Shown here one piece after another: positions 6,001 through 46,842 of a stretch of DNA of 64,000 nt (position 1 is its first letter; each line of letters begins with the position of its first letter). Position numbers and translations under genes: made by a program. This DNA is from Lepidodermella squamata (Eukaryota; Animalia; Gastrotricha). Under the pieces are notes generated by a model. It was not told the origin of the DNA and did no database searches. It worked only from the letters and a program-made list of their open reading frames with translations. The stretch is taken from positions 3,100,001-3,164,000 of the forward strand of contig JBLDXI010000020.1 of NCBI GenBank assembly GCA_047495785.1, in the 5' to 3' direction.

Positions 6001-7007
6001 ATATATCGAGTCTTGACAGTTCATATTTCTATAACCATTTTATTATATTTCAAAATAGAATAAGTCGAACGTTTTCAAGAAAATTTTTCTTATAGATCAT
6101 TCACGATCGAGCAGCTTGGCGATGCTCAAACTTCCATCCCATTGTAAGTATGGCATTGTTCATCTGCTTTATATACTATTCAAAACTTCTTCATAGCCCT
6201 GCAACCGTTGACCAGGCAAGCTCCTCCGATGCGCCTGTTGTCCCACGGTTAGTATAACCTATCAATTCCATTTCATTGCTTCAAATTCTGCTCAATTTAT
6301 CAGAGTGCCGACATTGTTGGACTTCTACCGCGTCGTCGGTCCTGATTTGTCGGAACGCGAGCCCAATGGCGTCGTTTATCAATTGGTGGAGGTGGCTCAG
6401 CCGTGGGCCAGCTACTTTGGCGAAACCGAGCAAGCGCCTCTACAGCGACTTTATGACCACAATCACAGTAAATACAAGAGAGACTAAAAAAATCGAACTG
6501 CTAACATTTGATTTCAGATGCAGGGGCCGCGATGACTCGCGGCAAGCAATGGCATTTGTACGCCGTCGCTCGTGGCTTGCCTGATGACGAAACCAGGTTG
6601 AACCTGGAGAAAAGGTGCCAGGACCTTATTACAGCGCAACCTGAGCTTTTGCCGTGGCAAGTTAGGACCAAATTTGAGTCCTACGTGGACGACATCAACG
6701 CTCGCCTGCATGGGTCCACTGCTGTAATTCGTTACGGCGAGTTGGACGAGGCTAAGGTTCACCGCCTGCGTATGATCTCCTTGTGAGTCAGCTGATGGAT
6801 GTCATTCTTTTTACTCAATCCTTTCACTTTTCAGCACGTCGACAATTAGAGTAGCACCGGCGCCACCGTCAGCGCAAGAAGAAGCAGGTGAACTAATCGA
6901 CCAAGATCCGCCCCCAAAGCGGTAAATAGATTTAAGTTCACATTTGCTTGTAGCTTTTTACTATTATTTTCAGAATTCATCTCGCAAATAATTGTTCGCC
7001 GTCTTGA
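1..7007 (+). CDS. 3' part of a spliced Helitron-like Rep-helicase-GIY-YIG gene, copy 1 (5' end lies outside the window)
   Basis: Exons join in frame: 298-1635, 1758-2745, 2798-3003, 3059-3470, 3528-4525, 4575-4646, 4710-4960, 5017-5479, 5536-5594, 5652-5938, 6096-6143, 6197-6247, 6304-6467, 6518-6782, 6835-6921, 6974-7007. Rep motifs: FGTITCN, RNEFQ..KSHLH, YLTSY. Helicase motifs: GPPGAGKT, IIEEIG, GDFAQL, QFPL..ASTIHR, AQLAVILSR. Confidence 0.85.
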
Positions 7008-7490
7008 TGTTTCTGCCGATCTTCCGATAAATGAAATGTTCCAATTCAATGTTTTTCCTAGTAGTAGCCAATAAACGTATCGCACTTTTTCTAATAGTGT
7101 TTATTGAATCAGAGTTATCAGATCGACTTGACTTAATATGAATCAAATCGCCACGAAACCGTAATTTTTCTGATCCTTGTGCTTCGTCCATTATATAATT
7201 TTTCTAAAAGATTACCTAACCTCATTGCCATGCTCTTGGCTCTGTGGCAACCGAACCATATTCATCTCACAAGTTGGCACTATAGTTGCTTCCGGAACCC
7301 ACCATAAAGATGACAGATCTTAGTTTCAAGTTTTTCCATTGCATCACCATTGCTAAATCAAAATCCATCAAATAAAAATGCTTCCCTGCGTAAATCTATA
7401 ATTTCAAATCTTAATCACGGAAAATAGGGTTTATATCAAATCAAATCAAACCCAAAGCACTGATGAGAATATCAAATTTCAAATGTCATT
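1..7490 (+). mobile_element. Helitron-like rolling-circle unit, copy 1 (partial)
   Basis: Near-identical to 15000-22489 at an exact offset of 14,999 bp (for example ORFs 288/15287 and 3532/18531). Confidence 0.8.
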
Positions 7491-8109
7491 AACACTGGGG
7501 TGAGGGGGAGCCACCGTCCCCTCCAACGACGTGGAGGGGATCTCCAAGGGGTGGTTCGAGTCCTTACCCATTACCCAGGAGAGTGGAGAAAAAGAAAGAA
7601 AAGGCTAGCGCAGCGTAAGCCTTGTCGAACTCTCCTGGATGGGGGCGCGACTCTGGGAGTTCCGAAGGAACGCCAGTTCCTTTACACGTGTTTTACACAT
7701 ACGCCGTAGATTACCACGAACGAAGTGAGATTTCATCCCAACAGGGGGGCCCGAGAACGCGTTGGTTAACAGGACATTCTCCGATGAAGCCGCCCGATTT
7801 ATGGTAGTATCCTGGACCCCTCAGGACCTCCCAGAAACTTTTTCAGCTCTAACGGACCTTCCGTTGATTTTCTAGAAATTAGGACGGTTTTTTCCTATTT
7901 TACCGTATTTTTTGGTCACGTGACCCGGAATGGGTAGTATATGAGGGGACAGTAGGAGGATATGATAAGGACACCAAAAAACTAACCACGCTAACCAGAG
8001 TATCCAAGCCAGCTGACAGGCTGGCCCCTCGCCCCTGGGGGAGAGGGGCCTACAATAAATCAACAATGCTAGCTGGCGACCAAAGAGCAAACGACGAAAA
8101 GGCAATATA
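7491..8109 (+). repeat. Module M copy 1: ~620-bp GC-rich, hairpin-rich direct repeat
   Basis: Runs aacactggggtgaggggg...ggcaatata. Recurs at 22490, 24953, 30619 and 59351 in the same orientation. Confidence 0.9.
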
Positions 8110-8464
8110 CGTAAAAGTCAAGGTCAATTGAACAATTCTGCGGCGAATAAATTGTGCATTTTCCATATACAACAATAGGTTTACATGTAATCGACAACGG
8201 AGAATCCGAATATGACGTTCATTTTGTTATGAAGCAATTATAACCCAATGATAGCCCCTCCAACTAATTTTTCTGTTCACTGCTATGGAGTTGGCATGGT
8301 TATATTTTTTATTAAATAACATAATGCAGTTCAAGTTTCAGGGCTCGAAGTTTTAAAGCACATTTTTAAGTGAGCGGTTCAATAACGCACTGTCTTATTT
8401 CCATATTCATATGCATGCGCAGAAACAAAAAAAAATAATAATAACAATAAAAAATTAAAAGAAA

Positions 8465-8543
8465 ATGTGTCGCGGCCGGGACTCGAACCCTCCATTAACT
8501 GCATTTCACAACGTTACACTGAAACCACTCGGCCACAACACAT
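8465..8543 (-). other. tRNA-like / SINE-head-like element with Pol III A and B boxes
   Basis: Minus strand reads GTGTTGTGGCCGAGTGG (A box) ... GGGTTCGAGTCCCGGCCGCGACAC (B box). The ends pair and are followed by TTTT. No convincing anticodon arm. Confidence 0.5.
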
Positions 8544-9274
8544 CTGACATATCCATCGCAAATTAAATTTCAATTAAATATTCAACGAAATTATCAAAAC
8601 AGTTTCCAGCGCCTTCCGGGAATCGGACGCGTCTCTATATAATTTATTCACTATATAATTCGCTACGCAGTGGTTCGGAAGGCAGTGGTTCGATTGCTGC
8701 TCACATCACATTTTTCCTTCTCATTTTTTCTTCTTAAAATCAGATTTATTTCTGTTTAATTTTTTTGCAGAGTGAGCAATAAAAAATAAACGTTTACCAT
8801 TCACGTGAATCTTCATGAGTACAAAGTGCATGCCTGTCATATGGCCGACACGCGATTCAGCATCAGCTGTTTCACGGCGCAGCGGCGGCAACAGCAAGCA
8901 GACGGTTCGATCCGGTATTCAACCATCATTCACAACGATTTATTTCTCTTCAAAACAACCTCTATTTCCCTAATCATTAGAATTACTTATGCTGCCAGCT
9001 CCTATCAATCTATCTTCCGCTCGAATCGATAACATTGTGACAATGTTGCTCTCTCAGGTTTGCTAGTATATTATTCCCAGTTCATATCACCATTCCCACT
9101 ATAATTACAGCTACTGGATGAAATGGCGATTTCAACACTGTTGTCCACTTTGGTTTTCCATGGTCACTACTCCCTACCAGAAAGCGGTGAGTACATTATT
9201 TTCCTCATTCATTTTTTTTACTATTGTAAAATTTATTGATTTTTTCATTCATTAACACGTTTTTTTTGCTCCCC

Positions 9275-11217
9275 AATATTTTCTTTCGTCGTTATGCTCC
9301 CGTATTCGACGTTTTCGCCATCAGCAACGTCGATTCCACTAATTCATGTCATTTAATTTTACCCTGATTTACTTTTTTCAAGAATTTTTTCAAACTTTGA
9401 AATTCCAAACCAAGGTCGTAGGTTGGTGCCCGACCTCTCATTTTTTCGCCCTCAAATATTTTCTTTCATCGATATGCTCCCGTTCTCGACGTTTTCGCCA
9501 TCAGCAACGTCGATTCCACTAATTCATGTCAATTAATTTTACCCTGATTTACTTTTTTCAAGAATTTTTTCAAACTTTGAAATTCCAAACCAAGGTCGTA
9601 GGTTGGTGCCCGACCTCTCATTTTTTCGCCCTCAAATATTTTCTTTCATCGATATGCTCCCGTTCTCGACGTTTTCGCCATCAGCAACGTCGATTCCACT
9701 AATTCATGTCAATTAATTTTACCCTGATTTACTTTTTTCAAGAATTTTTTCAAACTTTGAAATTCCAAACCAAGGTCGTAGGTTGGTGCCCGACCTCTCA
9801 TTTTTTCGCCCTCAAATATTTTCTTTCATCGATATGCTCCCGTTCTCGACGTTTTCGCCATCAGCAACGTCGATTCCACTAATTCATGTCAATTAATTTT
9901 ACCCTGATTTACTTTTTTCAAGAATTTTTTCAAACTTTGAAATTCCAAACCAAGGTCGTAGGTTGGTGCCCGACCTCTCATTTTTTCGCCCTCAAATATT
10001 TTCTTTCATCGATATGCTCCCGTTCTCGACGTTTTCGCCATCAGCAACGTCGATTCCACTAATTCATGTCAATTAATTTTACCCTGATTTACTTTTTTCA
10101 AGAATTTTTTCTAACTTTGAAATTCCAAACCAAGGTCGTAGGTTGGTGCCCGACCTCTCATTTTTTCGCCCTCAAATATTTTCTTTCATCGATATGCTCC
10201 CGTTCTCGACGTTTTCGCCATCAGCAACGTCGATTCCACTAATTCATGTCAATTAATTTTACCCTGATTTACTTTTTTCAAGAATTTTTTCAAACTTTGA
10301 AATTCCAAACCAAGGTCGTAGGTTGGTGCCCGACCTCTCATTTTTTCGCCCTCAAATATTTTCTTTCATCGATATGCTCCCGTTCTCGACGTTTTCGCCA
10401 TCAGCAACGTCGATTCCACTAATTCATGTCAATTAATTTTACCCTGATTAACTTTTTTCAAGAATTTTTTCAAACTTTGAAATCCCAAACCAAGGTCGTA
10501 GGTTGGTGCCCGACCTCTCATTTTTTCGCCCTCAAATATTTTCTTTCATCGATATGCTCCCGTTCTCGACGTTTTCGCCATCAGCAACGTCGATTCCACT
10601 AATTCATGTCAATTAATTTTACCCTGATTTACTTTTTTCAAGAATTTTTTCAAACTTTGAAATTCCAAACCAAGGTCGTAGGTTGGTGCCCGACCTCTCA
10701 TTTTTTCGCCCTCAAATATTTTCTTTCATCGATATGCTCCCGTTCTCGACGTTTTCGCCATCAGCAACGTCGATTCCACTAATTCATGTAAATTAATTCT
10801 ACCCTGATTTACTTTTTTCAAGAATTTTTTCAAACTTTGAAATCCCAAACCAAGGTCGTAGGTTGGTGCCCGACCTCTCATTTTTTCGCCCTCAAATATT
10901 TTCTTTCATCGATATGCTCCCGTTCTCGACGTTTTCGCCATCAGCAACGTCGATTCCACTAATTCATGTCAATTAATTTTACCCTGATTTACTTTTTTCA
11001 AGAATTTTTTCAAACTTTGAAATCCCAAACCAAGGTCGTAGGTTGGTGCCCGACCTCTCATTTTTTCGCCCTCAAATATTTTCTTTCATCGATATGCTCC
11101 CGTTCTCGAAGTTTTCGCCATCAGCAACGTCGATTCCACTAATTCATGTCAATTAATTTTACCCTGATTTACTTTTTTCAAGAATTTTTTCAAACTTTGA
11201 AATTCCAAACGAAGGTC
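9275..11217. repeat. 180-bp tandem satellite, ~10.8 near-identical units
   Basis: Exact 180-bp period (units at 9301, 9481 ... 11101) with only scattered substitutions. Confidence 0.97.
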
Positions 11218-11917
11218 ATTTTTTTGAATTTTAGAATTTCGGAAATTTATATTAGCATTTCATTTTTTTTTATTTTTTCTCTTTTTTACCAGTTTGCGAA
11301 TCGAATGACCGATGTTGCACATGCTGTAATCAAATGGCTGAAAACGATTTCAAGACGAAGTGATTTGTGATTTTTCAAACGTGCTACTTCATTTGAACGT
11401 TGTTTACCAGCTTTGCTGTATGATGCTTTTTAAATTATATTGTTCCAAACCCCATTTTCGCTGACCCAGGCAGTAATAGGGTAGAGATGCCGTCTCAATG
11501 CCCGGCTATGCAGTTAAATAGCCAACCGACGTTGGAATAGTCGGTATAAACTTCCACCGTCCCGGCTCAGACGGCGAAAACGACCACGTCTTGGTGAGAC
11601 GGTAAAAAAAACTCCGACAAGGCAAGGTCGGTAAAAAACTTCCAAAATGTCCGCAGGGCTGAGCGACCAGCGCCCTCACTGTGATTCGTCACAAATACTA
11701 AGCTGGAAGGGAACCTATGACGATCTGTCAGGCATCTTCGGATCCGAGGTTTCTCCCCGATATTTCAATTATTGATGTGCATTGGTAATTTCAATAAAAT
11801 ATGTTTTTCATTTCAATATATTTTTTTTAATTGATGTTCTTCATTCCATTCGCATATGGTGTTATTTTTTATTTATCTAGTTTTATGATGACAATTTTGT
11901 GATTATGAACTGGAATC

Positions 11918-14900
11918 ATGGTGAAACCGCCTAATTGGAAGCCAAAATCGAAGGGATCGCGTAAGTGTTCCTTTTGCAAACGGAAAGGTGTTCGAATCTC
12001 AACCCACTGCGGACTACTCAATTGCTCTAAAGCTAAAGGGCAACACCATCCCAAGCCGTGCATTAAGGTTCAACCTCCACAGTCCGCTTCTCAGTCCAAT
12101 TGTATGTTTTCCTAATCAATCAGTTATATATGTTTCATCTGTTTTTACACAGCCACGTCGTGTTCGCATGTTGGCGAATCTTTATCGGTAGCTCCATCCT
12201 CACTCACTGTTCAGAATACGTCTCAGCAGTCGTTGATATCTCAAGGCTTGTTCTTGTTATTCATCCTCAAATTGTATAAATTTGCGATAAAATTTCCCCA
12301 TAGGTAGCGGCGCTGTTCTGACTGCTTCGGAGCAATTGTTGGATTCTCAAGGTCAGTAATTTTTATTTCTCAACTATAACTTGACATGTGGCTGTGCCGT
12401 TCCAGCTGTTCCGGCTACCCGGGAAGATCCGCTGCCACCTCCGGGTTAGTTGTTAGATTGAGATTTATTTCATGTCTTGAGCGAATACCACTAAGCTCTT
12501 TTAAGAATTATAAGAATTGAAGAGGTGTTAACATATGATTGTTATGTCATTTAGTCTTGTCAAATAATATTTTCAGGCGCTTCTTTGAACGAACGGCAGG
12601 AATCTAGCGCGCCTGCAACACGTCAGCCAGTAACTCAGCCATCTTGTCCAGTATGCGGCGCAAAAGGCAGGAAGTATCTGACCCACTGCGACAATGAGGA
12701 ATGCCGGATTAGTGGCCGCGGGCATCACGCTAATCCCTGTTTCCAGTTGGAACGACCCGGGCTACAGGCCGGTGTAAATCTTGAGCAGCAACGTAAGTAT
12801 TATCCACCGGGTAACAACCTTTCATAAATAATGATTCATTTAGCTGTGGCGTCCTCTGGAGCTGTTGCTGCTACGTCACAACGGTCGCTGCCATCTATAG
12901 GTTAGTTATTTAATCAAGAATTGTGCTGCCTGGTGTTAACTAAAACTGCTGTTTGTTGCAGCTAGTGGTGGTTCTTCTAATGCACCTATTCTATGTGACA
13001 ACTGCAGAAGACGATCGGTGCCCTTTTTCGACATCGACATTGCTGTCGTGGAAGAGCCGGTATCTGGACGCAGCTATGGTGCTCTAGGACTAAGGAAAGT
13101 CTATGAAAACTGCTCGTTATGCCGTTGTTGCCGTCACTATTTGCGCAACGGCGATGCTCGTTTTCCCGCCGGATGGCCAGCCCTTGTTTATAGCCTTTTC
13201 TTCAAAGCAGCGAATAGGCACCTAGCAGAGGCCCTCTCTAACTACATATCGCCGCTCATGAAAATGATGTGGAGCGAGGTCGACGGCTCAAATGTTATGC
13301 GGGACTCGCAGCCGTGTTTCGTTGACAAGACACGTGATCTGGCTGATTTCATGGCCAATATCTACAAAGACGCAGGTATTCTATCAACCTACTAAATGAG
13401 TATACGAATGCAGTTTTTTTTTTAATTGCAGGAGGATTCAGTTACGCGCTAAACATGTACCCAGTGCCCGACGTGATATGTCCGCAAGGTTGCCTCGCTT
13501 TCATGGAGAAGTGCCAGCTAATCCCGTACCATCATTTGATCCAACATGTCACTGGCAGCAATTTCTTCGATTCCGACTTGCGCTGGTTCGAGTCAAGGAG
13601 ACCCGACTGGCCGTGCAACCCAGTGCCTTTCCTCGCTTGGGATTTCGCTGCTGCAATGGTCATGGACGAGACAAAGGGCCTATGCATCCTTGCCTGCATT
13701 GACCACAGCAAGCCGGACCTGTTTTCCATGTACCTGCATCTCCCTGCGAATCCCGAGTTCGACCGGTTCCACGATCCGCAGCAGACCGAAATCTATGCAC
13801 CCGTGCACGTGCAGCCCAATTTCGTCAGAGGCGGGCGAGTCGGTCAGTCGAACGCATCAGTGCCAGTGACAAAAACTCTGGGTGATCAATTAGGTGTCGG
13901 CAGCTTTACATTGCGTGGTGCTCACTCGGCAAATCGCAAGGCTTTGAGCATGTACGCCAGCGCCTTTAAGCCACACCTTTTGGCCTTGCGATATCGTCCT
14001 GAGATTCGCAACACCGCGATCAGCAGATTTGGCGAGGAACACGTGGCTCACGTTCTTGCTGATTTTGATCAGCATTGCCCAACTGCTGTCGTGAGAAACC
14101 ATGTCAAGGGTGGCACTTTCATCGAGCTAGCTGACTGTTACTTCACCTGGGCTATTCGCCGCAAAATCGCGACAGGTCAGTACATTTCATTCTTAATCTA
14201 CTACTATAGATTAGACTCAACAGAATTAGCACTGCATTAATTTTGCTGATAGTGATAGCCTTGTAATCGGGCCCTGCACTGAATTTTAGATGCGTTTTGT
14301 CCAATATAAAATTCTCCAATATAAATGGTCAAAGAACGGATGTAGCAACTGTAGTAGAGTATCGCGCGGGATAACCACTGCAAATTATTATGTAGTGTAC
14401 TTCGGGAGGATAAGATTAGGCCGATCGAACTGCTCCAAATTCTCGATATAATAAACAAATATAGAGATACTAAGATTCAAGCGCATTAACAATTCATCAT
14501 CGATTCCTACGAATTGTCTCATTTCGTCCTTCTTTATTTTAGGAAGTGATTCGTCGAAAAAAGGGAAAACACCTTCAGAAGCCGTGATCTTCAATCCGGT
14601 TCACCCGAACGATGATCATGGCTTAATCCCCTGGGCGTTCAAGTCGGGTCAAGGCGACAACCCTAGTCAGCTCCTGACACTGGTTGCCAACGTCGTTTCG
14701 TTGTGCCGCCCTGTGTACCGTGCGGCGTTGAGTCATCTAGTGCTTGGCAGTCCCGATTTAACACGCGTCGACATCGGTGACTTGCTCAGTCATACTGTTT
14801 CGCTGCCGCGCCCGAAAACCCCTCGTACTCTGAATTTGTCGCATCTGGCAAGGGACTTCTGGTCACTGACAGAACCCGAAAGTGATAGCGGATCTGACGA

Positions 14901-17900
14901 TGACGAAGAATCCCCCGATGTCGTTACGCGGGCATTAACTTTGATTGGGAGAGTTACTGCGCCGATTAATGATGTCGAGTTGTCGTTTGCTGGATCTCAT
15001 CTTTTAGCGATAAGAAAGGGGCAAACCATGGACGGCGAAAGAAGGAGTCTCCGAAGTCATGGTGAGTGTTTTATTCATATTTTGGCAATTATTGCTGCAT
15101 TATTAGACGTTGTGGTGATACATATCATGATCTTGGGTCCTGAATTTCAAAATTTACTGGTTTTAATCAAAAATTGAAACAACAAAAAATTGAGGGCTCC
15201 CATTCAAGTTATAATGACGTAAATCTTGAAATATTGAGTAATTTTCAAATCGTTTGATTCATACCTAGATAACCCTTGTTTATTTCGTGTTGACAGTGGG
15301 TAGGGTGCTGGTCATCCACGGAGGTCAATCTCAGCTGCTGACCGAATACCAGACTTCGCATGAGCTGCTGATGTGCCGACCCGAAGGTGCCTTGCCGATC
15401 AATTGGCCCGCATTGCCCTTGTCGCTGAAAGCTGGTCATCACCTGCTACTTGCCCGCGTCAAGTTTGGCTCGAAATCCTACATCGTTTTTCGATGGTCGC
15501 CTAGCTTCAGTGGCTGGTGGACAGTAGAGCCTAGCGGGCGAGTGGTTCGTGGTGTCAGTGATCAGCACATGCGCTCTGACGTCCAATTTGCGATTTACGC
15601 TCTGCCTGGCAACCAGACGTTCTGCAATCAAGCCGTCCGTCAATCGCTCGGTGGTCAAAGCAAGGCTGCCTGCGAAATGCATTTCGACTCTGTCGAGTTC
15701 AACTTCACTCTTATGAAAGTGCCGGTGAAACATAAGGTGAAGTGTTGCATGCGATCACCGGGAAGAGCCAATCAATGCGGCAAACCTGCTCAGTTGCGCT
15801 GTCCTGCGGGCTTGCAGAATGGCAGCTTGTCGTGCAGTGTCGGCATCTGCACGCGGTGCTTCAAGAAGCTTCCAGCGGACGGTATCACCAAGCTCTCAGC
15901 GCCTGACTTTCTGCCTGATGTGCCTGAAGATGCTGAATTGCAACTGTCAGCTAGCAGGGCATCGAACTTGGAAGCTCAAGCCGACGAGGTTCCGCCGCAG
16001 CCTGAGCAGCTTCATTTGGCTACTGATATTCAATTTCCTCGAGGCGATGCTGAGCCGCTGTATGATCCGACCAAGGGTATTCTCGCCAAGTATCTCTGGC
16101 AGCACTTGGGAATTCTGCAGCGAACCAGGCTCGCTTTCGATTCTGCCCAGAAGTCTTTTCTACTGCAGCAGATGGTTGCCTTCGGAGATGCCCCTGCTAC
16201 TTCCATCTTGTACCCGGAGGGTGCTCTGTTTCCGTCACTTTTCTATTGCCAACGTGATGGCAGTGTTGTTGGTGCTTTGCCTCACCATCACTACTCGTCC
16301 TACAACTCCGACTATACAGGTGGAATCGGCTCCCTGTCTGATCATGTCAAAGTCAGGTTGCGCAACTTCTTCTTGGCAACAAGCTGGTCGTTTGCGTCAA
16401 TCTACTTCTCCTTTGACATGAAGCTATCGGCGCAGCTGAACAAAAACAGCACTGCAATCTTCATGAAGCGTGGGACAGAAGGCCTGGCAGGTAAAGGCGC
16501 TGTTGGCTGGTCTCCTCCTGGCACGGCTCTCGAATACGAGGAGTTCGACAAGGAGTCGAGGCTGAAAGAGCTTGGCGCCCTAATCAAGCATGAAGAATGG
16601 AAGTGGTTCGGGACAATTACTTGTAATGATACAGGTTAGCACAAGTTTTGGTATTCAATCTCACTCAATTGTAGACTGAATAATTTCTCCAAGAATTGTT
16701 TGAAATTTGAAATTTTACCACCTCGACCTACACAATGCATTATTTTTCAATTCCAGGCACACCTGGTGTATGTGAAATCGTCAAAGCCCTTATGATAAAC
16801 GCTCAAAGGCACCATGGTCCACGCCCTGTTCTGTCGAAGGCCGACTATCAGCGAACTTTTCGTCAGCGTCTGCTCCTTGTTTCAAGGCTTGACGAGACCG
16901 AGTACAAGCGGCTGTACTACGCCCATTTCATCCTCATCAGCATGGCTTGGCAACGAGTGCAGGAGCATCTGATCGAGTTCCTGAAGCGCACGAATGTTGT
17001 TGGCACTGTCACCACTATTTTCGTCAGGAACGAATTTCAGAGCGAATCACTCGTTGGCAACAAAAGTCATCTGCATATGGGCATTTCAGTACGCGAAAGC
17101 CGGGCAGAACTGCTGGAGAAAGTTTGCTGTGATCCTCGTGAATTCTTCTCGGAGCGGTACGGCACGTCATTCGACGAGCTTCAGCGCTTGAGGTTGGTCG
17201 AGAGCCGAGATCACTTCGAGCTGCTCAAGGAGGTCCATTACCCCTTCCAACGTCACGAATGCGAGAAAGCGTTTTGGAAATGTCAAGTTCCACGCGGCGA
17301 AGGAGGGGAAATGGTTTGCCGAGTTCGCCAGCACGGCGTCTCCAGCAGCGGCTATTTCGAAGAATTCCGCAACGTGTACTCCGAGGATACCCTGAAAGAG
17401 CTGCAATCCCTAGACCTCGCCAGAGAAGTGCCCAATCCCACTGGCGACTTTGACTGGGAATTTCTGGCTGATCAGCTCAAGTCGGGCGTGTACCACTACG
17501 CGATCAAGCATCTCGAGAAGGGCGTGAAGTTCATTCCGCAAATCCCGATCATCGCGGCAATGATGGGCGGCTCCACGAACTTTCAGATATGCGATTCTCA
17601 TTTCAGCGTATCTTACCTGACGAGCTACGTTGCCAGCTCCGACGCTCGCCCTGAAGCTTACGCTGCAACGACAGATGTTCCGGGCCAAGTCGTTGCTTTG
17701 TTCCCTGCTGGTTTTGAGCGAGGTCAAAAGCTTGCTAGTGTTCGGTGAGTAATATCTTTGCACTTCAATTGACTTGAAAAACTTTGATGTTTTTAGGAAA
17801 GTGATGGAAGCGAAGCTGAAGCATTTCCGTCGAGAAAGCATGCAGAGCTTTATCTTCATCGCCTTGACAGAAGTTGCTTGGTTCGCGTTGGGGTTTCCCT

Positions 17901-20900
17901 ACACCATCACGAATGTCGGTTTCGTACACATCAACACACACCCACCAGCTTCGCGGCTAATGTTGTGGCGACCGAAAGAAGCAGTGAAAAAGCGACTACC
18001 GGGTATGCTCTTGAGAATAGTTATTGTGATTATTTTCAAATAATATTCCAAAAACAGGTACAGATGTAGTTGCTGTCGACCCAAACTACAATCGCCGGGG
18101 CCTGCCTCAGTGGCGCTTGTTCACGGAAGCATGCATTCGTCTGATCATGAAAATGAGAGGCACGAATCTGCTAGCTGGCCCTGTCGAGAAGTTCGAGATT
18201 CGACCTCCCGAGGCTCGTATCTTTGCGTCACCTGCTATCTATCACGCGGTGTTCGTCATCGACCGGAAAAACCGACGACCATACAACCCGATGGTCGATC
18301 CTTACATCCGTTTTTTCGACGGCTTCAAGCGGGAGGTCCGAATCAACGATTGCAGTTTGCGCATCGCGCTCGACTATCTGGCTCAGCAGGACCAATCCAA
18401 TGCAGCCGTTCAAGCACTCACGGAAATTTTCGAACTCTTGGTCGAAGGCGATCCTGTCTATGTTGACCGGTAACGATCTTTACGTTTTTATAATTTTCGG
18501 AATATTTCAAATGTACGCTGAACTAGGTACTTGCACGTCACAAATAAGGCGGCGATAATTCCAGTCCTATCCACCATCTCTCCGCTCAACCGCTTCAACT
18601 TCTTGTATCACGTCGTCATGACGTTTGGTCGAATCGAAGATGAGGCTACTACCTTTCCGGCTGGGCATCTCCGGGCGGCATTTGTTCGATCGGGGCTCAT
18701 TCGGGTCAATCCTGAAGGCGAGCCGACCAACCTTCCTGCCGACGTGAGGTCTCTGAAGCGTCGCGTCATTCTCGAAATCTTCGCTTTCCTGCCAATCGGT
18801 GTCAAGAGATTCGATTTTTACGTCGCCACTCTGAAATCCATGTTCGAGCAGTTTTTCTTTGGCGATGGAGGCACCGACAATCTCTCGGCACTGACTGACT
18901 GGGATGCGATTGAACGGGAAGTTGACGAGGATATTGTCCGAGCGGAAGGAGAAATGAAGCGGTCTGTGGTTGAGGTGACGCATTCGCAGCTTGTCGGGAA
19001 ATTGCCGCTACCACCGCTGTCGGATTTCACTGACGCTACATCGTGTCAACCTTTGGAATGGATTCCGAGTCTTCAACGACAACCAGGTCAGTCGGACCAG
19101 TCTTTCCAGGAGCAGCAGGCGGCTCTGGCTTTCGGTATGAAGACACTCGAACGCTTCCGAAGCAGAGCTAGCTTCAAGCACATCGCACTGGTTGGTCCTC
19201 CTGGGGCTGGAAAGACAACGCTGGCGCAGATCCTTGCCATGGTTGCCGTTTCTAAGGGACTACGAGTTGTCATTACTGCTTTGACCTCGGAGCGAGCACG
19301 AGTTCTTGGCGGTCGGCACATCCACCTGCTTTTTCCTTTGCCGGTTAAGCAAATACCGTACAAAAATGTAATGGCGTATGCTGACGGCTGCCTCAAGAAT
19401 CTGTGTTTCAAGACTACGCCGTCTGTTGTCCTATATCGGGCTGACGTCTTCATCATCGAAGAAATTGGGCTGGTCTCTGCTGAAACCCTGGAAATCTTGG
19501 ACACAGTTATGAGGAGTCTTACAGGTAAGCAAACCAGCATTCAATTATTACTGGTATTTATAGTTTTCATTAGGAGTCGATGCGAAAATGGGTGGCAAAT
19601 TGATCATTGCTACCGGGGACTTTGCTCAGCTCGAGACGATCAATGGTGAGAGTTGATTTATTGCAATACTAACATGTATATTGTATTTGTTTTTTTTAAT
19701 TATCCCAGGTCGATCCTTTTGGGAATCAACACAATTGTACCTCAGCTACGACGTCGCATTGTTGAAACATTTCGTTCGGGCTGCCACTGACCCGCTACTC
19801 CAGCGGGTGCTGTTGATTTTGCGGCAAGGCGTTCTTGACGAGATTGACCGGGACTTCATCCTCAAAGCTGTGACTAGAACGTGCAACTTTTACGACACTT
19901 GGGACAACGTTCCGTTCCTTGTCCAGCGGATCGTCCCAACAAGAGAAGCTGAACAAGAGGTTAGTTGGAAACGGAAAATTTTGGTGATCACTCTTGCCTT
20001 TCATTAATTGATCAGGTCATTCGGAAGTTCCTGCAAGACGCTAGTCTCAGTGGCAAGACTTTGAAAACAGCTCTATGCATCGACGAAGTAAACACGCGTG
20101 GTGCCTGGGAACCTCTTCACCGTCCCGAATGGAAAAAAGCTATCAACAAACAGTCACTCAAGCCCGAGAACTTAACGCTCTTTGTTGGTGCTGTGGTTGC
20201 TATGACCTACAATCACGTAGCGTCGAACCCGCAACACTCCTTCTCCCAAGGGCAGCTAGCTCTGGTGACGCAGTTGCCGGAAGACATGGCCGCACCGGAT
20301 GCCAAAATTTCTGTCCGCTTGGTTCCTCCAGGGCTGCGTGACATTGCACCAGATGAGGCTTGGCCAGAAATAAGTGTGGGCCGGCATCGGGACGATAACA
20401 TTGTTGTTGGCGACAACAAAACGCACCTGCGTCGTGTTCAGTTTCCGCTGCGGCATTACATTGCCTCGACTATTCATCGTGAGTGCTAACCTTGTTTTTA
20501 TATTCAAGTATATAAAAATGTTAATTGTTTTCAGGAATCATGGGTTCTACCTGCGAGAACGGCGTTGCAGCCAAGATTGCTTCCAACGAGAAGGTACGTA
20601 TTGCGAACAATAACTGTGGATATTGATATGTTCAATGTACTGTAATGAAGGGCTACGTGCTATGGGAACGGGCGCAGCTTGCTGTCATTCTCTCGCGGTG
20701 CCGTTCACTTGACCGTGTGTCATTTGTTGGCGAACGCGCAGACATCACTGTGGCCATCGAAAGGCTGTTGATGGCAGTCGATGAGCCATACGAGGCTATC
20801 GTCGCATCGCTGCAAACGCTGGACGTGCTGCCTACCTCAACAGTCGCCAGTAACTGGTCAGCCGGACGACAGCAGCAGGTCAGCGACCCCGACGAACTGC

Positions 20901-22006
20901 CCGACATCACGTTCCGCGTTTTACGAACAACTTCCGGGTTAGTCCACTTACTTATTTGGCTCTTTGTATAGTCAACTCACTAATTGCGTATGTCCCATTA
21001 TATATCGAGTCTTGACAGTTCATATTTCTATAACCATTTTATTATATTTCAAAATAGAATAAGTCGAACGTTTTCAAGAAAATTTTTCTTATAGATCATT
21101 CACGATCGAGCAGCTTGGCGATGCTCAAACTTCCATCCCATTGTAAGTATGGCATTGTTCATCTGCTTTATATACTATTCAAAACTTCTTCATAGCCCTG
21201 CAACCGTTGACCAGGCAAGCTCCTCCGATGCGCCTGTTGTCCCACGGTTAGTATAACCTATCAATTCCATTTCATTGCTTCAAATTCTGCTCAATTTATC
21301 AGAGTGCCGACATTGTTGGACTTCTACCGCGTCGTCGGTCCTGATTTGTCGGAACGCGAGCCCAATGGCGTCGTTTATCAATTGGTGGAGGTGGCTCAGC
21401 CGTGGGCCAGCTACTTTGGCGAAACCGAGCAAGCGCCTCTACAGCGACTTTATGACCACAATCACAGTAAATACAAGAGAGACTAAAAAAATCGAACTGC
21501 TAACATTTGATTTCAGATGCAGGGGCCGCGATGACTCGCGGCAAGCAATGGCATTTGTACGCCGTCGCTCGTGGCTTGCCTGATGACGAAACCAGGTTGA
21601 ACCTGGAGAAAAGGTGCCAGGACCTAATTACAGCGCAACCTGAGCTTTTGCCGTGGCAAGTTAGGACCAAGTTTGAGTCCTACGTGGACGACATCAACGC
21701 TCGCCTGCATGGGTCCACTGCTGTAATTCGTTACGGCGAGTTGGACGAGGCTAAGGTTCACCGCCTGCGTACGATCTCCTTGTGAGTCAGCTGATGGATG
21801 TCATTCTTTTTACTCAATCCTTTCACTTTTCAGCACGTCGACAATTAGAGTAGCACCGGCGCCACCGTCAGCGCAAGAAGAAGCAGGTGAACTAATCGAC
21901 CAAGATCCGCCCCCAAAGCGGTAAATAGATTTAAGTTCACATTTGCTTGTAGCTTTTTACTATTATTTTCAGAATTCATCTCGCAAATAATTGTTCGCCG
22001 TCTTGA
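11918..22006 (+). CDS. 25-exon, ~2,678-aa protein: Zn-knuckles, HUH Rep, Pif1-like helicase, GIY-YIG endonuclease
   Basis: 5' exons 11918-12101, 12153-12245 (GC donor), 12304-12351, 12406-12444, 12577-12792, 12844-12900, 12962-13375, 13432-14175, 14543-15061, then the copy-1 exons shifted by 14999. Total 8037 nt, open throughout, with consistent splice phases. AATAAA about 60 nt after the stop. Confidence 0.82.
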
Positions 22007-22489
22007 TGTTTCTGCCGATCTTCCGATAAATGAAATGTTCCAATTCAATGTTTTTCCTAGTAGTAGCCAATAAACGTATTGCACTTTTTCTAATAGTGTT
22101 TATTGAATCAGAGTTATCAGATCGACTTGACTTAATATGAATCAAATCGCCACGAAACCGTAATTTGTCTGATCCTTGTGCTTCGTCCATTATATAATTT
22201 TTCTAAAAGATTACCTAAGCTGATTGCCATGCTCTTGGCTCTGTGGCAACCGAACCATATTCATCTCACAAGTTGGCACTACAGTTGCTTCCGGAACCCA
22301 CCATAAAGATGACAGGTCTTAGTTTCAAGTTTTTCCATTGCATCACCATTGCTAAATCAAAATCCATCAAATAAAAATGCTTCCCTGCGTAAATCTATAA
22401 TTTCAAATCTTAATCACGGAAAATAAGGTTTATATCAAATCAAATCAAACCCAAAGCACTGATGAGAATATCAAATTTCAAATGTCATT

Positions 22490-23102
22490 AACACTGGGGT
22501 GAGGGGGAGCCACCGTCCCCTCCAACGACGTGGAGGGGAACTCCAAGGGGTGGTTCGAGTCCTTACCTATTACCCAGGAGAGTAGAGAAAAAGAAAAGGC
22601 TAGCGCAGCGTAAGCCTTGGAACTCTCCTGGATGGGGGCGCGACTCTGGGAGTTCCGAAGGAACGCCAGTTCCTTTACGCGTGTTTTACACATACGCCGT
22701 AGATTACCACGAACGAAGTGAGATTTCATCCCAACAGGGGGGCCCGAGAACGCGTTGGTTAACAGGACATACTCCGATCGACTTGCCCGATTTATGGTGG
22801 TATCCTGGACCCCTCAGGACCTCCCAGAAACTTTTTCAGCTCAATCGGACCTTCCGTTGATTTTCTAGAAATTAGGACGGTTTTTTCTTATTTTACCGTA
22901 TTTTTTGGTCACGTGACCTGAAATGGGTAGTATATGAGGGGACAGTAGGAGGATATGATAGGTACACCAAAAAACAAACCACGCTGACCAAAGCTTCCCA
23001 GCCAGCTGACAGGCTGGCCCCTCGCCCCTGGGGGAGAGGGGCCCACAATAGATCAACAATGCAAGCTCGCGACTAAAGAGCAAACGACAAAAAGGCAATA
23101 TA
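22490..23102 (+). repeat. Module M copy 2
   Basis: Variant of 7491-8109 with small indels and substitutions. Confidence 0.9.
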
Positions 23103-24434
23103 AATAAAATGCAAGGTCAATTGAAAAGACGTGAGGCAAATAAATTGTGAATTATGCATTTAAAGCAACAGAATTACCCGTAATCGACTACGGAGAATCC
23201 GAATACGACATTCATTTTGTTAAAGCAATGATAATCCAATGATAATCACTTCAACAAATTTCGCGCTCGAGCAGCTGCGTTACGGACTACGGAGAATCCG
23301 AATATGACATTTATTTCATTATCGAAATATGATAACCCATGATAACCCTTCAAACCATTTTCGCCCTCCTTTTACCCACTTTCGCCGCGCCACTTGCGTA
23401 TTTTCACCACGAGTTGCGTATCTTTCACCACCTAACAACTTACGACGCATCACTGTTGAGGTAAGAAACTTCGAACAAGCACTTCAAATTATGCGCCACA
23501 TCGACCCATCGACATCGAGCTGCGTATCGCTGAGGACCATCTCATCATTGTTGTAAATTCAGTCATTCATGTACACTGATGATTGTTATACGTTATACGT
23601 ATGTGTTCCTTGTGATATGAGTTCTTTGAGAACCTTGTGGAATATGTGTTAAACGTGATTCACCACAAAAGATCCGCCTTGAAACACAGCTAACTTACAC
23701 TGCCTTTTTGTGTCCATTGCCATAGAAGGTGCATTTTGCACATTAATCTATGGGTTTACCCGTAATCGACTACGGAGAATCCGAATATGACATCCATTTT
23801 ATTATAAAGCAATCCTAACCCCATGATAATCCTTCCAATAATTTTCCAAAAATGTTCCGGCTCGCGCGGCTGCGCCGCACTCGCTGAAAGAGTTGCGTAA
23901 CTTTAACCACCTTACAACTTAACGAATCCTCACCGATGAGGTAAGAAACTTGCAAGTGTGAATATGCACAGTTTCACATAGCAAAAACCAGCAAGTTGGA
24001 CATGGCACCCCATTAAAAAACCAAATTAGCCAAATTAGCTGAACATGTTCTTTACGAAGAAATGTTTCATATTTCGACGTTTTCGTCATCAACAATTTTT
24101 TATATTATTTAATTCAACCCTGCTTGATATTTTACAAACATTATTCGAAACTTCTAAGAAAGGTCCATAAAGTTTCACATTTCACAAAATGCATTTTTAT
24201 TTTTCATTCATGCTACTACGAAGTACTAATGATAGCGCGGTACAATAACAAACACGTTGACATATGATATCTCAACGAAGCCGTCATTCACCAGATCTGG
24301 ATACGGAATCCTCGCCACTTAATTCAACGTTGATTAATATTTTGCAAACATTTTTCGAAACTTTTAAGTATCCCAGTAGGGTCCAAAAAGTTCAACATTT
24401 CCCTTGACAATACCCTCGGGAAGTAGCTGTAGCG
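22790..24434 (+). repeat. ~1.65-kb direct repeat (3' part of M plus flank), duplicated at ~30929-32573
   Basis: Offset 8139 (ORFs 22865/31004 and 23329/31468 are identical). Both copies end at agtagctgtagcgc. Confidence 0.88.
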
Positions 24435-24952
24435 CTGTGTTACCCCGATTAATTTTTACAACAACCTCTCGAAACTTCGAAACTTTAGCTCAAACCTTCT
24501 TGTTTTGTTCTTTTTGCGTTCTCGTCATCAGTGACATGGATTCTACCAATTCATGTCATTCAATTGTTACCCTGATTGTTTTTTTACAACAAACTCTCGA
24601 AACTTCGAAACTTCAAAACATGGTCGTGGGTTCGAACCAGATCTCTCCTTTTTCTACTCATCAATTTGTTCTTCAACCTGCACGCATTCGTTGTTGGCGT
24701 TTTCGTCATCAGCTACATCGATTCTACCAATTCATGTCATTCAATTGTTAACTCGATTTTACAACATCTTCTCGAAATTTTATGAAAGCGAATAAATGTT
24801 CAACTACTCTTTAACGTGCATTCTTCTCTAAATATTTCCAAGCCATTCAAAAATACGTTGGACGGTTCCTGAGCGAACCCGAAATTACTACTTATCTATA
24901 AACACCTAATCCGGAGAACATTCAAATTTACAATTCAATTTCATGTTTCATC

Positions 24953-25574: not shown

Positions 25575-28073
25575 ACGGCAATTTGATACAGTCAGTCCTC
25601 GCCATAGTACAGTCCGATATAGTACACTTATTCGTCATAGTAGACGTTAAGGCCGGTCCCAATTATGAGCTAACAAGGTAACTATGACTCGCAAGGGTAC
25701 ACTTTTCGTTTAGGTACACCGTTTTCTTGTCTCCCGTGAAAGTGTACAATAGCGAATTCTGACTGTATATAACAATAGTGATTCTTTCAAAATTTGAAAT
25801 GTCGTGGGTTCGAACCCCAAGCTCTCGTTTAACTTCTCTCTAAAGATTTATTTCAACCTCATGCTCTCGCTGTTAGCGATTTCTTCGTCACCGAGTTTAA
25901 TTCAATTTATTCATGTCATTCAATTGTACTCTGATCAATTTTTTCAACTATGTTCCGAAACTGTGAAACCTCGAAAAGGGAGCTCGAGGGTTCGAACTCA
26001 AGCTCTCGTTTAACCGCTCTCATGCTTCGTTCTCAGCGTAGTAGTTATCATCGACATCGATTTAACTTGTGGATGTAATTCGATTGTACCCTGCTTAATT
26101 TGTTACTCAACTTTTTTGAAAATTTGAAATTTCAAAGGAAGGTCGTGGTTTCGAAGCCAAGCTCTTGTTCTTTCGCTCTCTAACGCTTTCTTTCATCATC
26201 ATGCGTTTTCAGCGTTTTTGCCACCGGCAACGTCAATTCAACTCTATATTTTTATAAACGCCATAGATGCGATATCATAACTGAGCTACGTAGGCTGCTT
26301 AGTTCCTGCAGATACCTTGATACTGTCTATCAATAGGTTTAAACGTTGTAGACGACATGGTGTTCACTCGGTGTGTTCCCTGAATTTTTGGAAAAATGCT
26401 ATAAGAGCAATATGAAATAACGCAAATGATATTTTTTCTATGAGCTCATGGCAAAGATGTTATTGGACGCAAGATATGTAAAGATTGCCTATCAGTAATG
26501 CCAATAACTACAATGAATTGATGTACCATCATCGTTTACAGGGAATACGGAAATACTCAGTCCGAATATTTATAGACGAATCGGTTTTCACTCGGTGTGT
26601 TCCCAATTTTATACGGAAATCGTGATTGTACCCTGCTTAATTTCTTAAAAGATTTTTTTGTAAATTTTTGGAGGCGAAAGAAAGGTGGAGGTTCCAAAGA
26701 AAGGTTCGAACCCATGCTTTCGTTTACTGCTCTCCAGGGCGACAAGAGATCATAAATTGACGAAAGATATAAGTGAGCAAACTACAAAAGAGCAAGTCTT
26801 ATTACTGTTAAAATCCAAGGTCCAAAGTCCAAGGCTCAAGGCCCAAGGTTCAAGGTCCAAGGTCGAAGCCAAGCTCTCGTTCAAGTGTTCTCCGAGGATT
26901 TCCATCATCTTAATGCATTCGTTCTTGGGGATACCGTCATCACCGACATCGATACAACCTGTCGATGTTATTTAATTGCACCATGCTAAATGTTTTCCAG
27001 CAATTTATTCCGATTTTGTGTCTCGTTCAAGCCAGAGAAACTGCGTTATCTACACTCTACCCGTCAAGCGTCCACTATTTATTCCAGAGTACCTTGAACT
27101 TCGAGATTCCCTATATGATTCCTACTGAAATGCATCAGCGATATCGATTCACCTTGTGGATGTGATTGAGACGTATTCTGTTTAATTATTTCGAATAATT
27201 TGTTAAAACTTCCAAATTCTAAACGAAGCTCGTGGGCTCGAACCCAAGCTGTTCTTGAGTGACTTCTTTCATCCTCATGCTCTCGTTCTCAGCGTCATCT
27301 TCATTCTTCATACTCATCACCGACATCGATTTCACTTGTCAAAGCTATTTTAAAAATTTGAGGCCAAAGGAAGGTCGAGGGTTCGAACCCAAGCGTTGTT
27401 TACTGTTCTTCAGGCCGCCGGAAGATGATAAATTGACGATAGATACAAAAGAGCAAATCTTATTATGATAAATTCAAAGGTCCAAGGTCGTGGGCTCGAA
27501 CCCAAGTGCTCTCCAATAATATCTTTCATCCTCATTATTTGGTTCTCGGCGTTATCGTCATCACTGACATGGATTCAAAATATACTTGTCATTCAATTGG
27601 ACCCTGTTTTATTATCCTTGCTATTCAATTGTAACCTCAACAACTTAAAACGAAGGTCCAAGGTCAAAGGTCCACGTTCCAAGGTCCAAGGTCCAAGGTC
27701 GTGGGTTCGGACCCAAGCTCTCGTTTAGCTGCTTTCCTATGATTCCAATGATCATCCTCATGCTTTCGTACTCACCGTTATGTCATCACCGACATCGATT
27801 CAACTTGTCGATGTTATTCAGTTGTACCTTGATCAATTTTTTCCAAGCATCTTTTGAAAATTTCAAATTCCAAAGAACGGTCCTAGGTTCGAACCCAAGC
27901 TCTCGATCTTTTGCTCTGTAACGCCTTCTTTCATCCTCATGCTCTCGTTCTCGGCGTTAACGTCATCACTGACATCGATTTAACTTGTACATGTTATTCA
28001 ATTCCTACCTGCTTAATTTGTGATAAGTGTTTTTTTGAAAATTTCAAAGGAAGGTCGTGGGCTCGAACCCAAG

Positions 28074-28410
28074 CTTTCGTTTAACTGCTCCCCGATGAGA
28101 TTAACCTAGATTAATGATAGCGTGGTACAAGAAACACGATAACATAACATAACTGAACAAAGCCTCCATACAACCGAAAGGCGACTTTGTTGTTAGTGTC
28201 TAGTTCAAGCCGAATCACTTAGTGAAAGGAGAAACAGCGTTATCTACGTTTCTCCTTTCACTAAGTGATTCGGCTTGAACTAGACACTAACAACAAAGCT
28301 CGCCTTTCGGTTGTATGGAGGCTTTGTTCAGTTATGTTATGTTATCGTGTTCTTGTACCACGCTTATTCATTAATCTAGGTTTAATTCTTCGGGAGCCAG
28401 TTAACGAAAG
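28074..28410. repeat. Long fold-back inverted repeat (~160-bp arms, 12-nt loop at 28236-28247)
   Basis: ...cacttagtgaaaggagaaac agcgttatctac gtttctcctttcactaagtg... Inner arms are perfect; outer arms differ by single-base indels. Confidence 0.9.
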
Positions 28411-30618
28411 TCGTGGGTTCGAAGCCCAAGCTTTTGTTTACTGCTCTCCAGGCCGAAAAGAGATCATAAATTGAAGATGGATACAAGAGAGCAAACTACA
28501 AAAGAGCAAGTCTTATTACTGTTAAATTCCAAGGTCCAAAGTCCAAGGCTCAAGGCCCAAGGTTCAAGGTCCAAGGTCGAAGCCAAGCTCTCGTTCAAGT
28601 GTTCTCCATGGATTTCTGTCATCCTAATGCATTCGTTCTTTGCGTTAAAGAGCAGGGAATGCGAAAACTGTTCAAAGTCAATAAAAATACGTGTAGACGA
28701 TTCAGTGTTAAGGCGGTTTGTTCCTCTTTATTTTGATAAAACGCCATAGCTGCGATAACATGATATGACTGAGCTTCGTAAGCTGGTTTTGACCTTAAAA
28801 TATGTAAAATATGTAAAATTATCCTAAAATCTGTAGATAAATATAAGTCAAGGTCGATTGAAAAAGCCTGCGGCAAATAATTTGTGCATTTTGCACATTA
28901 ATCTGTGGGTTTACCCGTAATCGACTACAGAGAATCCGAATATGACATCCATTTTATTATAAAGAGGGGCCCACGAGAGACCAACAATGCAAGCTAACGA
29001 CAAATGAGCAAACGACAAAACGGCAATATAAATATAAGTCATGGTCGATTGAAAAAGCCTGCGGCAAATAATTTGTGCATTTTGCACATTAATCTATGGG
29101 TTTAAGTACTAATGATAGCGTGGTACAATAACAAACACGTTGACATATGATATCTCAACGAAGCCGTCATTCACCAGATCTGGATACGGAATCCTCGCCA
29201 TTTAATTCAACCTTGATTAATATTTTGCAAACATTTTTCGAAACTTTGAAGTATCCAAGTAGGGTCCAAAAATTGGATTGTTTTACCCTGATTGTTTTTT
29301 ACAACAACCTCTCGAAACTTCGAAACTTCAAAACATGGTCGTGGGTTCGAACCCGATCACTCTTTTTTCTACTCTTCAATTTGTTCTTTAACCTAATTCT
29401 TGCATCCGTATGATCTCGTTCTCGGCGTTTTCGTCATCAGCAACATCGAATAAACTTATCCTTGTCATTCAATTGTATCCTGATCAATTATTATTAATTT
29501 GTTTACCAAAATTTGAATTTCCAAAAGAAGGCCGATTGTTTGTTACACTTCAGCTCAAACCTTCTTGTTTCGTTCCTTCCGTTCTCTTCATCAGTGACAT
29601 CGATTCTCCCAATTCATGTCATTCAATTGTTACCCCGATTAATTGTTACAACAACCTCTCGAAACTTCGAAACTTCAGCTCAAACCTTCTTGTTTCGTTC
29701 CTTCCGTTCTCTTCATCAGTGACATCGATTCTCCCAATTCATGTCATTCAATTGTTACCCCGATTAATTGTTACAACAACCTCTCGAAACTTCGAAACTT
29801 CGGCTCAAACCTTCTTTTTTGTTCTTTTTGCGTTCTCGTCATCAGTGAGATCGATTCTCCCAATTCATGTCATTCAATTGTTACCCCGATTAAATGTTAC
29901 AACAACCTCTCGAAACTTCGGAACTTCGGCTCAAACCTTCTTTTTTGTTCTTTTTGCGTTCTCGTCATCAGTGAGATCGATTCTCCCAATTCATGTCATT
30001 CAATTGTTTTGAATGACATGAATTCATTTTATTAAATTCTTACACCGATTAATTTTTACAACAACCTCTCGAAACTTGGAAAATTAAACTCAAACCTTCT
30101 TGTTTTGTTCTTTGCGTTCTCGTCATCTCGTCATCTCGTCATCTCGTCAACTTGAATACATTCACTATTTTTTTCTACGTTTTCTTTCTTTGTGGTTTCC
30201 TTATTTTTATTTTCTAAACTTCATGTTTTCCTTTCTGGCGTTCTTGTCATCAGTCGAAACTGTCGAATCTTCGAAACTTTAAACCATGCTCGTTGTTTCG
30301 AATCCTATCTCTTCTTTTCTCTTCTTTTCGTCTTTTCGCTCTCAAATTGTATTCACTATGTTCTTTCTTTCTTTGCGTCCTCGGCATCAGGGACATCATT
30401 CTACCAATCCATTCTACCAATGTCATTCGATTGTTACCGTGATTGTTTACTACAAGAAATTCTTGCAACTTCGTAACTTCAAAACATGGTCGTGGTTTCC
30501 AACTCGATCTCTCGTAGTTTCACTCTCCGAACTTTCTTGTTTTCTTTCTTTGCGTTCTTGTAATCAAAGACATCGATTCTACTAATTCAGGCCATTCAAC
30601 TGTACCTCAAATGTCATC

Positions 30619-46813: not shown

Positions 46814-46842
46814 TTATCTAGTCATTGATTAAAAACACTTTC

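Follow-up and report, generated by a model that had tools for sequence, protein, structure and literature searches.

A predicted Helitron-like transposase with a C-terminal SLX1-type GIY-YIG nuclease, encoded by an intron-rich gene in the gastrotrich Lepidodermella squamata

Positions 11918-22006 of a 64,000-nucleotide stretch of contig JBLDXI010000020.1 from the gastrotrich Lepidodermella squamata (the whole stretch analysed here, hereinafter the window) are fragmented into many plus-strand pieces of open reading frame (ORF). Do these pieces belong to one gene, what protein would it encode, and is the gene part of a mobile element? A previous reading made from the sequence only (the sequence-only reading) had proposed a giant rolling-circle transposase combining an HUH Rep nuclease, a Pif1 helicase and a C-terminal GIY-YIG nuclease of the SLX1/YhbQ type. 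We regard this identity and architecture as very probable. We also consider it likely that the locus is an autonomous Helitron-like rolling-circle transposon with a single gene for a four-part transposase, present in at least three near-identical copies in the window.

The window is eukaryotic sequence, and its ORF pieces between 11918 and 22006 were joinable via GT..AG introns. Dynamic-programming splice models restricted to such introns gave a single open frame that begins with the ATG at 11918 and closes with the TGA at 22004-22006, with about 23-28 exons, a coding sequence of about 8.0-8.4 kb and a product of about 2,690 aa. An AATAAA polyadenylation-type signal was located about 60 nt after the stop codon (22069-22074, plus strand). 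Introns were mostly 49-64 nt long, with GTAAGT, GTTAGT or GTGAGT as donors and YAG as acceptors. The single spliced frame proposed earlier was therefore recovered from end to end. Its 25 exons and 8037 nt fell within the modelled range, but this exact model was not reproduced: alternative scoring schemes resulted in 23 exons (8382 nt), 28 exons (8079 nt) or 28 exons (8046 nt), and the exact exon count and the N-terminal junctions are uncertain. The best-scoring model contained a false intron in exon 1 and an artefactual 1-nt exon at 14396. Exon 1 is best kept whole (11918-12101); the undivided exon bears a Cys/His motif of which exon 12577-12792 contains a second copy. A model with few long introns was rejected, as it skipped real exons, and so was a model with introns of at most 135 nt, which stalled at about 15177.

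Comparison with intron-free relatives, described below, supported the splicing. The window was colinear with them from 12988 to 20956 in tblastn. BLASTP alignments crossed ten junctions gaplessly (exon ends 13375, 16634, 17744, 18002, 18469, 19524, 19645, 19959, 20478 and 20593) and two more with one gap column each (20937 and 21466). As intron-free relatives align across these 12 junctions, the splice model is supported beyond chance. Further, one alignment of the spliced model with relative P0132 continued past the helicase end and into GIY-YIG. For the junctions upstream of 12962, the segments 14180-14546 and 15115-15268, the linker exons at 21095-21246 and the final two introns, the placements are predictions of the splice model only. 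The difference in gene structure was large: about 25 short introns in the window gene versus uninterrupted ORFs of 2,268-2,363 aa in metagenomic relatives (loci L001 and L002), so that introns were either massively gained in the window lineage or else lost in the relatives.

The SLX1-type GIY-YIG core was mapped to 21364-21623 (plus strand, residues 2520-2589). It is split by a 50-nt intron at 21467-21516 (GTAAAT...CTAAC...TTTCAG), located between exons 21303-21466 and 21517-21781. Joining these exons yielded VYQL..SYFGET..QRLYDHNHNAGAAMTRGKQWHL..LNLEKR, which is exactly the peptide on which the sequence-only reading had based its assignment. That the domain could not be seen in the unspliced ORFs was also borne out, as Pfam searches of single window exons gave no match to GIY-YIG on the two half-domains and none to Rep, with only weak P-loop/PIF1 matches, and the two halves did not match PDB sequences in phmmer. 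After splicing, the C-terminal piece gave direct matches to the GIY-YIG of relatives. It scored 31 bits with a profile of 39 relatives from which the window sequence was left out (single-sequence search space, E 7.6e-12), and the Y, Y, G, R, H, N, W and E residues were all kept.

The type of nuclease was determined by profile and fold. A GIY-YIG profile from 29 relatives matched SLX1 structures (4xlg at 6e-11, 7cq2 and 6seh), the plant SLX1 homologue At-HIGLE (7wme) and bacterial UPF0213 proteins including 1ywl. PF01541 was matched individually by 19 of the 29 C-terminal domains. The fold was predicted on the domain of a relative from the tunicate Styela clava, not on the window's own spliced domain; the AlphaFold model had a pLDDT of 82, and its top 11 Foldseek matches were all SLX1 or At-HIGLE. 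The tail after the nuclease was modelled in the relative as helices and a small sheet. By profile and fold, the C-terminal domain is specifically of the SLX1/UPF0213 (YhbQ) type, as had been suggested. Neither a RING/PHD finger nor another Cys/His cluster was found after the nuclease in the window translation or in family alignment A1, and an SLX4-type activation of the transposase domain would therefore be unlikely.

Local family profiles placed an N-terminal domain, Rep, helicase and GIY-YIG in this order in the window protein, and motifs, profiles and structure matches agreed with the order of the three enzymatic domains named by the earlier reading. The HUH Rep nuclease was identified by motifs and family profile at 16565-17673 (plus strand, residues 1198-1526). 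The window translation contained motif I (FGTITCND, 16607-16630), the HUH motif (HLHMGI, 17068-17085) and the two-tyrosine motif (YLTSYVAS, 17614-17637), all on the plus strand, and an intron (16635-16756) sits between motif I and HUH. In the family alignment, H104, H106 and Y286 were invariant, Y290 was nearly invariant, and motif I was conserved. The best solved-structure match of the Rep profile was Helraiser (E 0.002), with motif I, HUH and YxxxY in the same order; the Rep exon alone gave no match to PDB sequences in phmmer.

The Pif1-family SF1B helicase was found at 19065-20782 (plus strand, residues 1936-2414) with five internal introns. Its Walker A (GPPGAGKT, 19194-19217), Walker B (19443-19469), GDFAQLE (19615-19635) and TIHRIMG (20469-20545) motifs were read from the plus-strand translation of the window. 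Pfam matches to PIF1/AAA_30 were weak on the window exon and clear in relatives, and the matches of the helicase profile, at 1e-25 to 1e-19, were to Pif1 of bacteria, Helraiser and PIF1 of eukaryotes, with PDB Pif1 proteins and Helraiser at about 1e-24.

In the N-terminal part, two zinc-finger-like motifs of the form C-x2-C...THC...C...HH..PC were read from the plus-strand translation (11963-12061 and 12642-12743); these Cys/His motifs of the window exons matched no Pfam family. They are followed by a family-specific domain of about 370 aa (12994-14147, plus strand, residues 172-537), which scored 268 bits with a family hidden Markov model, contains conserved Cys/His residues and one internal intron (13376-13431), and is shared by at least 50 family members. 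Its first 220 residues were modelled confidently by structure prediction. No match to this domain was found in Pfam, PDB sequences, PDB folds or BFVD.

To define the family, the Rep exon 16759-17742 was searched against 1.84 billion representative proteins (E ≤0.001). It matched only 125 of them, with a best identity of 36%; many were 1,500-3,600 aa long, and all apparently belong to one family of giant proteins. Named members came from the ostracod Cyprideis torosa, the amphipod Hyalella azteca, the tunicate Styela clava and the hagfish Myxine glutinosa, and the remaining members from ENA, JGI and Logan assemblies, including many environmental eukaryote contigs. The surroundings of two relatives whose loci were inspected were gene-poor and eukaryotic-looking. 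Relatives were present as several clusters or copies per source, with at least two loci in S. clava. On full-length relatives, Pfam detected Helitron_like_N, PIF1 and a C-terminal GIY-YIG, and one subclade (P0004 and kin) additionally carried an N-terminal OTU domain. The joining of the C-terminal exons to the helicase was corroborated by relatives that have both domains in one uninterrupted ORF.

Outgroup searches returned no canonical Helitron or Helentron, only family members and one fungal Helitron (P0158), which scored 66 bits against the family profile; family members scored at least 646 bits. No family member was found in IMG/VR, where just two weak helicase-only matches in giant-virus bins were obtained, in JGI metagenome contigs, or in a scan of one genome per prokaryotic species, the sensitivity of which was low. 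A word-indexed search with the 455-aa exon matched no protein of 250-796 aa, and an exact look-up of the neighbouring polymerase was likewise negative. In the Rep+helicase tree, which had P0158 as the only outgroup and was built without reference sequences of the HLE1 and HLE2 clades of Helitron-like elements (HLEs), the window protein grouped with ostracod proteins (support 97), and next with a metagenomic pair and the tunicate.

Domain order was counted in 70 family members of at least 1,500 aa. Rep-helicase-GIY-YIG was present in 51 of them. A helicase without a GIY-YIG match was seen in 15; since 14 of these end within 51 residues after the helicase, they are read as truncated predictions, and the fifteenth has a 135-residue tail that was recognised by the iterated profile. 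GIY-YIG was found in every major clade of the Rep+helicase tree, and no C-terminally complete member lacked it. Because every complete member and all major clades carry the domain, the fusion is old and retained, and ancestral rather than a sporadic capture. In the clade of P0034, P0105, P0015, P0124, P0074, P0062, P0030 and P0042, GIY-YIG was kept and its second Tyr, Arg and His were replaced; there the domain may survive as a non-catalytic module.

Self-BLAST of the window revealed repeated copies of a larger unit, all on the plus strand. Copy B spans 8271-23261 (about 15.0 kb, with provisional boundaries) and consists of a 5' region, a 180-bp satellite, the single gene described above and a 3' module. 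Copy A (1-8270) is cut by the window start. Its gene starts partway through the exon whose end in copy B is 15159 and stops at about 7007, and its 3' module occupies 7468-8270. The segment 1-8270 matches 15000-23261 at an offset of 14999, with the match ending at 8270/23261, so that copies A and B adjoin head to tail. In addition, 7468-11960 recurs at 59330-64000. This region contains a 3' module (59330-60130) directly before copy C, which is cut by the window end and comprises a 5' region, a satellite array of 11.9 units (61121-63257) and a gene start at about 63958. The corresponding 180-bp array of copy B, upstream of its gene, has 10.9 units (9261-11217), and the approximately 100-bp core of the repeat also makes up 126-169-bp arrays of gene-less elements in the window. 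These gene-less elements share both the 3' module and the related satellite with the transposase element. Tandem repeats were not found near the relative's gene at locus L002.

The 3' module of copy B (22467-23261, about 800 bp) ends in a motif of about 75 bp (23190-23261), which closes with ...CAACAAATTT. This motif, ending ...AATTT, occurred nine times in the window with four different sequences after it, and is the leading candidate for the element's right end. Copies A and B differed at 3 of 7007 gene positions (99.96% identical), which shows that the element was duplicated very recently. Their 3' regions (7008-8270 and 22007-23261) differed at 77 of 1255 positions (about 94% identical), so that each copy has its own variant of the 3' module. 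The 3' module of copy A resembled that before copy C (99%), and the module of copy B resembled one at 30607 (97%); near-identical genes with 3' modules that match other elements imply that modules were exchanged between elements. The sequence after the 3' end of copy B (23262-24435) recurred at 31401-32574 (97%), again after a 3' module, and diverged copies of the 75-bp motif were present at 23289, 23772, 31428 and 31911, as if 3' ends were tandemly stacked.

By analogy with Helraiser, Rep would nick one strand at the 5' end of the element and hold it covalently via a tyrosine, the Pif1-type 5'-3' helicase would peel the nicked strand off, and Rep would cut again at the 3' end and join the strand into the target. 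The GIY-YIG domain could then act as a second, structure-selective nuclease in the position taken by the AP endonuclease of Helentrons. Branched, flap or hairpin DNA arising from strand displacement might be its substrate, with a nick in either the target or the complementary strand that would let integration and second-strand synthesis finish. This role in transposition, suggested by analogy with SLX1 and with the Helentron AP endonuclease, is a reasonable possibility that falls somewhat short of being probable.

Several observations weigh against an autonomous transposon with an active second nuclease. Neither 5'-TC/CTRR-3' ends nor terminal inverted repeats were found at the element, the putative 5' end of which begins TTCTG (boundaries provisional). 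Its terminal fold was no better than shuffled sequences as a 3' hairpin (z -0.1 to -1.8), and around the junctions, represented by few independent copies, only weak 6-15-nt inverted matches were seen. The ends of the element are thus provisional. All three copies have the same orientation within 64 kb, each behind the same junction, and they could have originated by local or segmental duplication without transposition. The window Rep exons reached no Pfam threshold. In relatives, Helitron_like_N scored 18-37 bits against a cut-off of 28.9, with the borderline matches at 28-37 bits, and covered the C-terminal half of the profile only. Several junctions of the gene, mainly N-terminal, are placed by the model rather than by transcripts. 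Moreover, the full catalytic set of GIY-YIG was kept in only 25 of 62 family members, and in part of the family the domain may be inactive and no longer cut DNA. SLX1 itself requires SLX4 for activity, and an activation route for the transposase domain is not apparent.

With these points in mind, the copies might instead be tandem or segmental duplicates of a host gene family, that is, a domesticated Rep-helicase-nuclease rather than an active transposon. About 25 spliceosomal introns are unusual in a DNA transposon, the three equally oriented copies share an identical upstream junction, and termini and a target-site signature were not found at the window element. However, the gene lies amid a field of repeats in which its 3' module and satellite also occur in gene-less elements, the 3' terminal motif precedes four different sequences, relatives occur in several clusters or copies per source including the loci of S. 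clava, and head-to-tail copies are the expected product of rolling-circle read-through. We therefore consider a host gene family unlikely. It is highly improbable that the C-terminal exons form a separate small GIY-YIG gene downstream of a helicase gene. The linker exons 21095-21246 are indeed poorly conserved and their two flanking junctions lack homology support, but relatives encode helicase and GIY-YIG in one uninterrupted ORF, the P0132 alignment runs through from one to the other in the spliced model, and between them the frame stays open through canonical introns, with no start codon context or promoter-like gap.

The nuclease could also be a fragment of host SLX1 that was recently captured by a Helitron-like element and is carried as passive cargo. 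Host-sequence capture is known for Helitron-like elements, and the similarity of the domain to eukaryotic SLX1, closer than to any other type, makes a host-gene origin at some point probable. The GIY-YIG of the element HelenSM92 has been termed 'captured' in the HELIANO study (PMC11417382). Recent capture is quite unlikely here, however, as the domain has the same in-frame C-terminal position in every complete member, across tree tips that share about 25-35% identity, and its catalytic residues are intact in the window copy and in the 25 members noted above. Conserved position and retained catalytic residues argue that a capture, if there was one, was ancient and that the domain has been kept since. 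An autonomous Helitron-like transposon with a long-standing second nuclease hence remains our preferred explanation.

How does this element relate to known systems? A two-tyrosine HUH Rep and a Pif1-family SF1B helicase C-terminal to it, the features of Helitron-like elements in the broad sense, were both found. The window protein shares with Helraiser (HLE1; PDB 7lcc) the order of motif I, HUH and YxxxY and the Pif1 helicase that comes after them, and Helraiser was among the best structure matches of the family's helicase. In contrast, Rep similarity to Helraiser was marginal (detected by profile at the E value given above, and not with a single sequence), and the window family has another N-terminal domain and an extra C-terminal nuclease. 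The 5'-TC/3'-CTRR ends with a 3' subterminal hairpin and AT insertion of canonical Helitrons were not seen at the window element.

Helentrons (HLE2 subgroup b) are Rep-helicase proteins with a C-terminal AP endonuclease and often an N-terminal OTU. The window family resembles them in that a giant Rep-Pif1 protein bears a second nuclease behind its helicase, in the N-terminal OTU of the P0004 subclade and in the tandem repeats inside the window element. It differs in having an SLX1-type GIY-YIG and not Exo_endo_phos; no AP endonuclease was detected in 15 full-length members or the window pieces. DUF6570 was likewise not detected in the 15 members (E ≤0.01 or 0.001) or in 27 N-terminal domains (E ≤1), although a very divergent DUF6570 is possible. 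From the few independent copies in the window, no clear TT/TT insertion or short terminal inverted repeats could be made out. In the HELIANO study, HLE2 is marked by DUF6570, and the AP endonuclease is assigned to its subgroup b (PMC11417382). The same study mentions, in one sentence, the 'captured' GIY-YIG in HelenSM92, an HLE2 family of the moss Sphagnum magellanicum (PMC11417382), which was the only published Rep-helicase element with GIY-YIG found in our literature search. HelenSM92, compared by description only, shares Rep-helicase with GIY-YIG with the window family, and has TT/TT sites and short inverted repeats.

With SLX1, At-HIGLE and UPF0213 (YhbQ) proteins, the window domain shares the GIY-YIG subtype, the fold and the catalytic Tyr, Tyr, Arg, His and Glu, but unlike SLX1 it is fused to a transposase and has no RING/PHD finger. 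Penelope-like retroelements and GIY-YIG homing endonucleases are also mobile elements using a GIY-YIG nuclease; the window protein has no reverse transcriptase, and its best matches were SLX1 and not I-TevI, UvrC or the Penelope type. Replitrons are HUH transposons without a helicase; like the window element, they are eukaryotic transposons built on an HUH nuclease, whereas the window protein contains Rep motifs of the two-tyrosine Helitron type together with a Pif1 helicase.

Taken together, the family is a widespread and essentially undescribed Helitron-like lineage with an ancestral SLX1-type nuclease. Its distinctness, as put forward by the sequence-only reading, held in that it fell outside canonical Helitrons and Helentrons in all searches. 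'Undescribed' is slightly too strong, given the GIY-YIG reported for HelenSM92 (PMC11417382) and the automatic annotation of some relatives in IMG as 'predicted GIY-YIG superfamily endonuclease'. The family may represent either a so far unrecognised subgroup of HLE2 or a deep branch of its own. We put forward only tentatively the bolder view, which we think less likely to be right than wrong, that it is a third deep branch beside HLE1 and HLE2, spread over animals and many uncultured eukaryotes, with an ancestral SLX1-derived nuclease and a zinc-binding N-terminal domain, in which the nuclease would be essential to an altered rolling-circle mechanism, for second-strand or target cutting, and not cargo.

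Other features were identified in the window. A Polinton/Maverick-type element (33773-58205) is bounded by 300-nt inverted repeats (33773-34072 and 57906-58205, 92% complementary). On the minus strand it contains a 1413-aa polymerase-like ORF (36731-40972), with an FTDTDS motif recognised by eye and a weak Endonuclease_7 match, and an rve integrase with a chromodomain (41471-42937). N-terminal to the rve core of the integrase is a phospholipase-A2-like domain (PF08398, 29.6 bits), a domain more familiar from the capsid proteins of parvoviruses. An A32-type packaging ATPase (46112-46813) and further ORFs without assignment (46825-53563) were also present. Within 42455-46434, 100%-identical repeated blocks comprised three extra 169-aa N-terminal integrase fragments and a truncated ATPase start; these could reflect a real local amplification or an assembly artefact. 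Tandem repeats near the right end of the Polinton (56010-56710 with 179/358-bp units, and 53945-54691 with 366-bp units) appear unrelated to the 180-bp satellite. A near-perfect palindrome at 28063-28422 has arms at 28133-28235 and 28248-28351 that are 100% complementary around a 12-nt loop, with a further flanking 55-nt arm pair (76%). Rfam and tRNA scans of the window were empty.

Pipelines relying on Pfam Helitron_like_N over ORF pieces would overlook an element of this kind, which provides an example of a recently duplicated transposase gene with about 25 spliceosomal introns whose relatives have none. The family also offers a conserved N-terminal domain without a PDB or BFVD match and what may be a naturally SLX4-independent SLX1-like nuclease. 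Current classification divides Helitron-like elements into two clades, and their accessory domains (RPA, OTU, AP endonuclease) are usually regarded as dispensable captures. In the family described here, a second nuclease of another superfamily stands at the position of the Helentron AP endonuclease in every complete member. Because an unrelated nuclease has been kept at this position, the family gives convergent evidence of a need for a second DNA cut in some rolling-circle transposons, and it represents a clean system in which the purpose of that cut can be tested.

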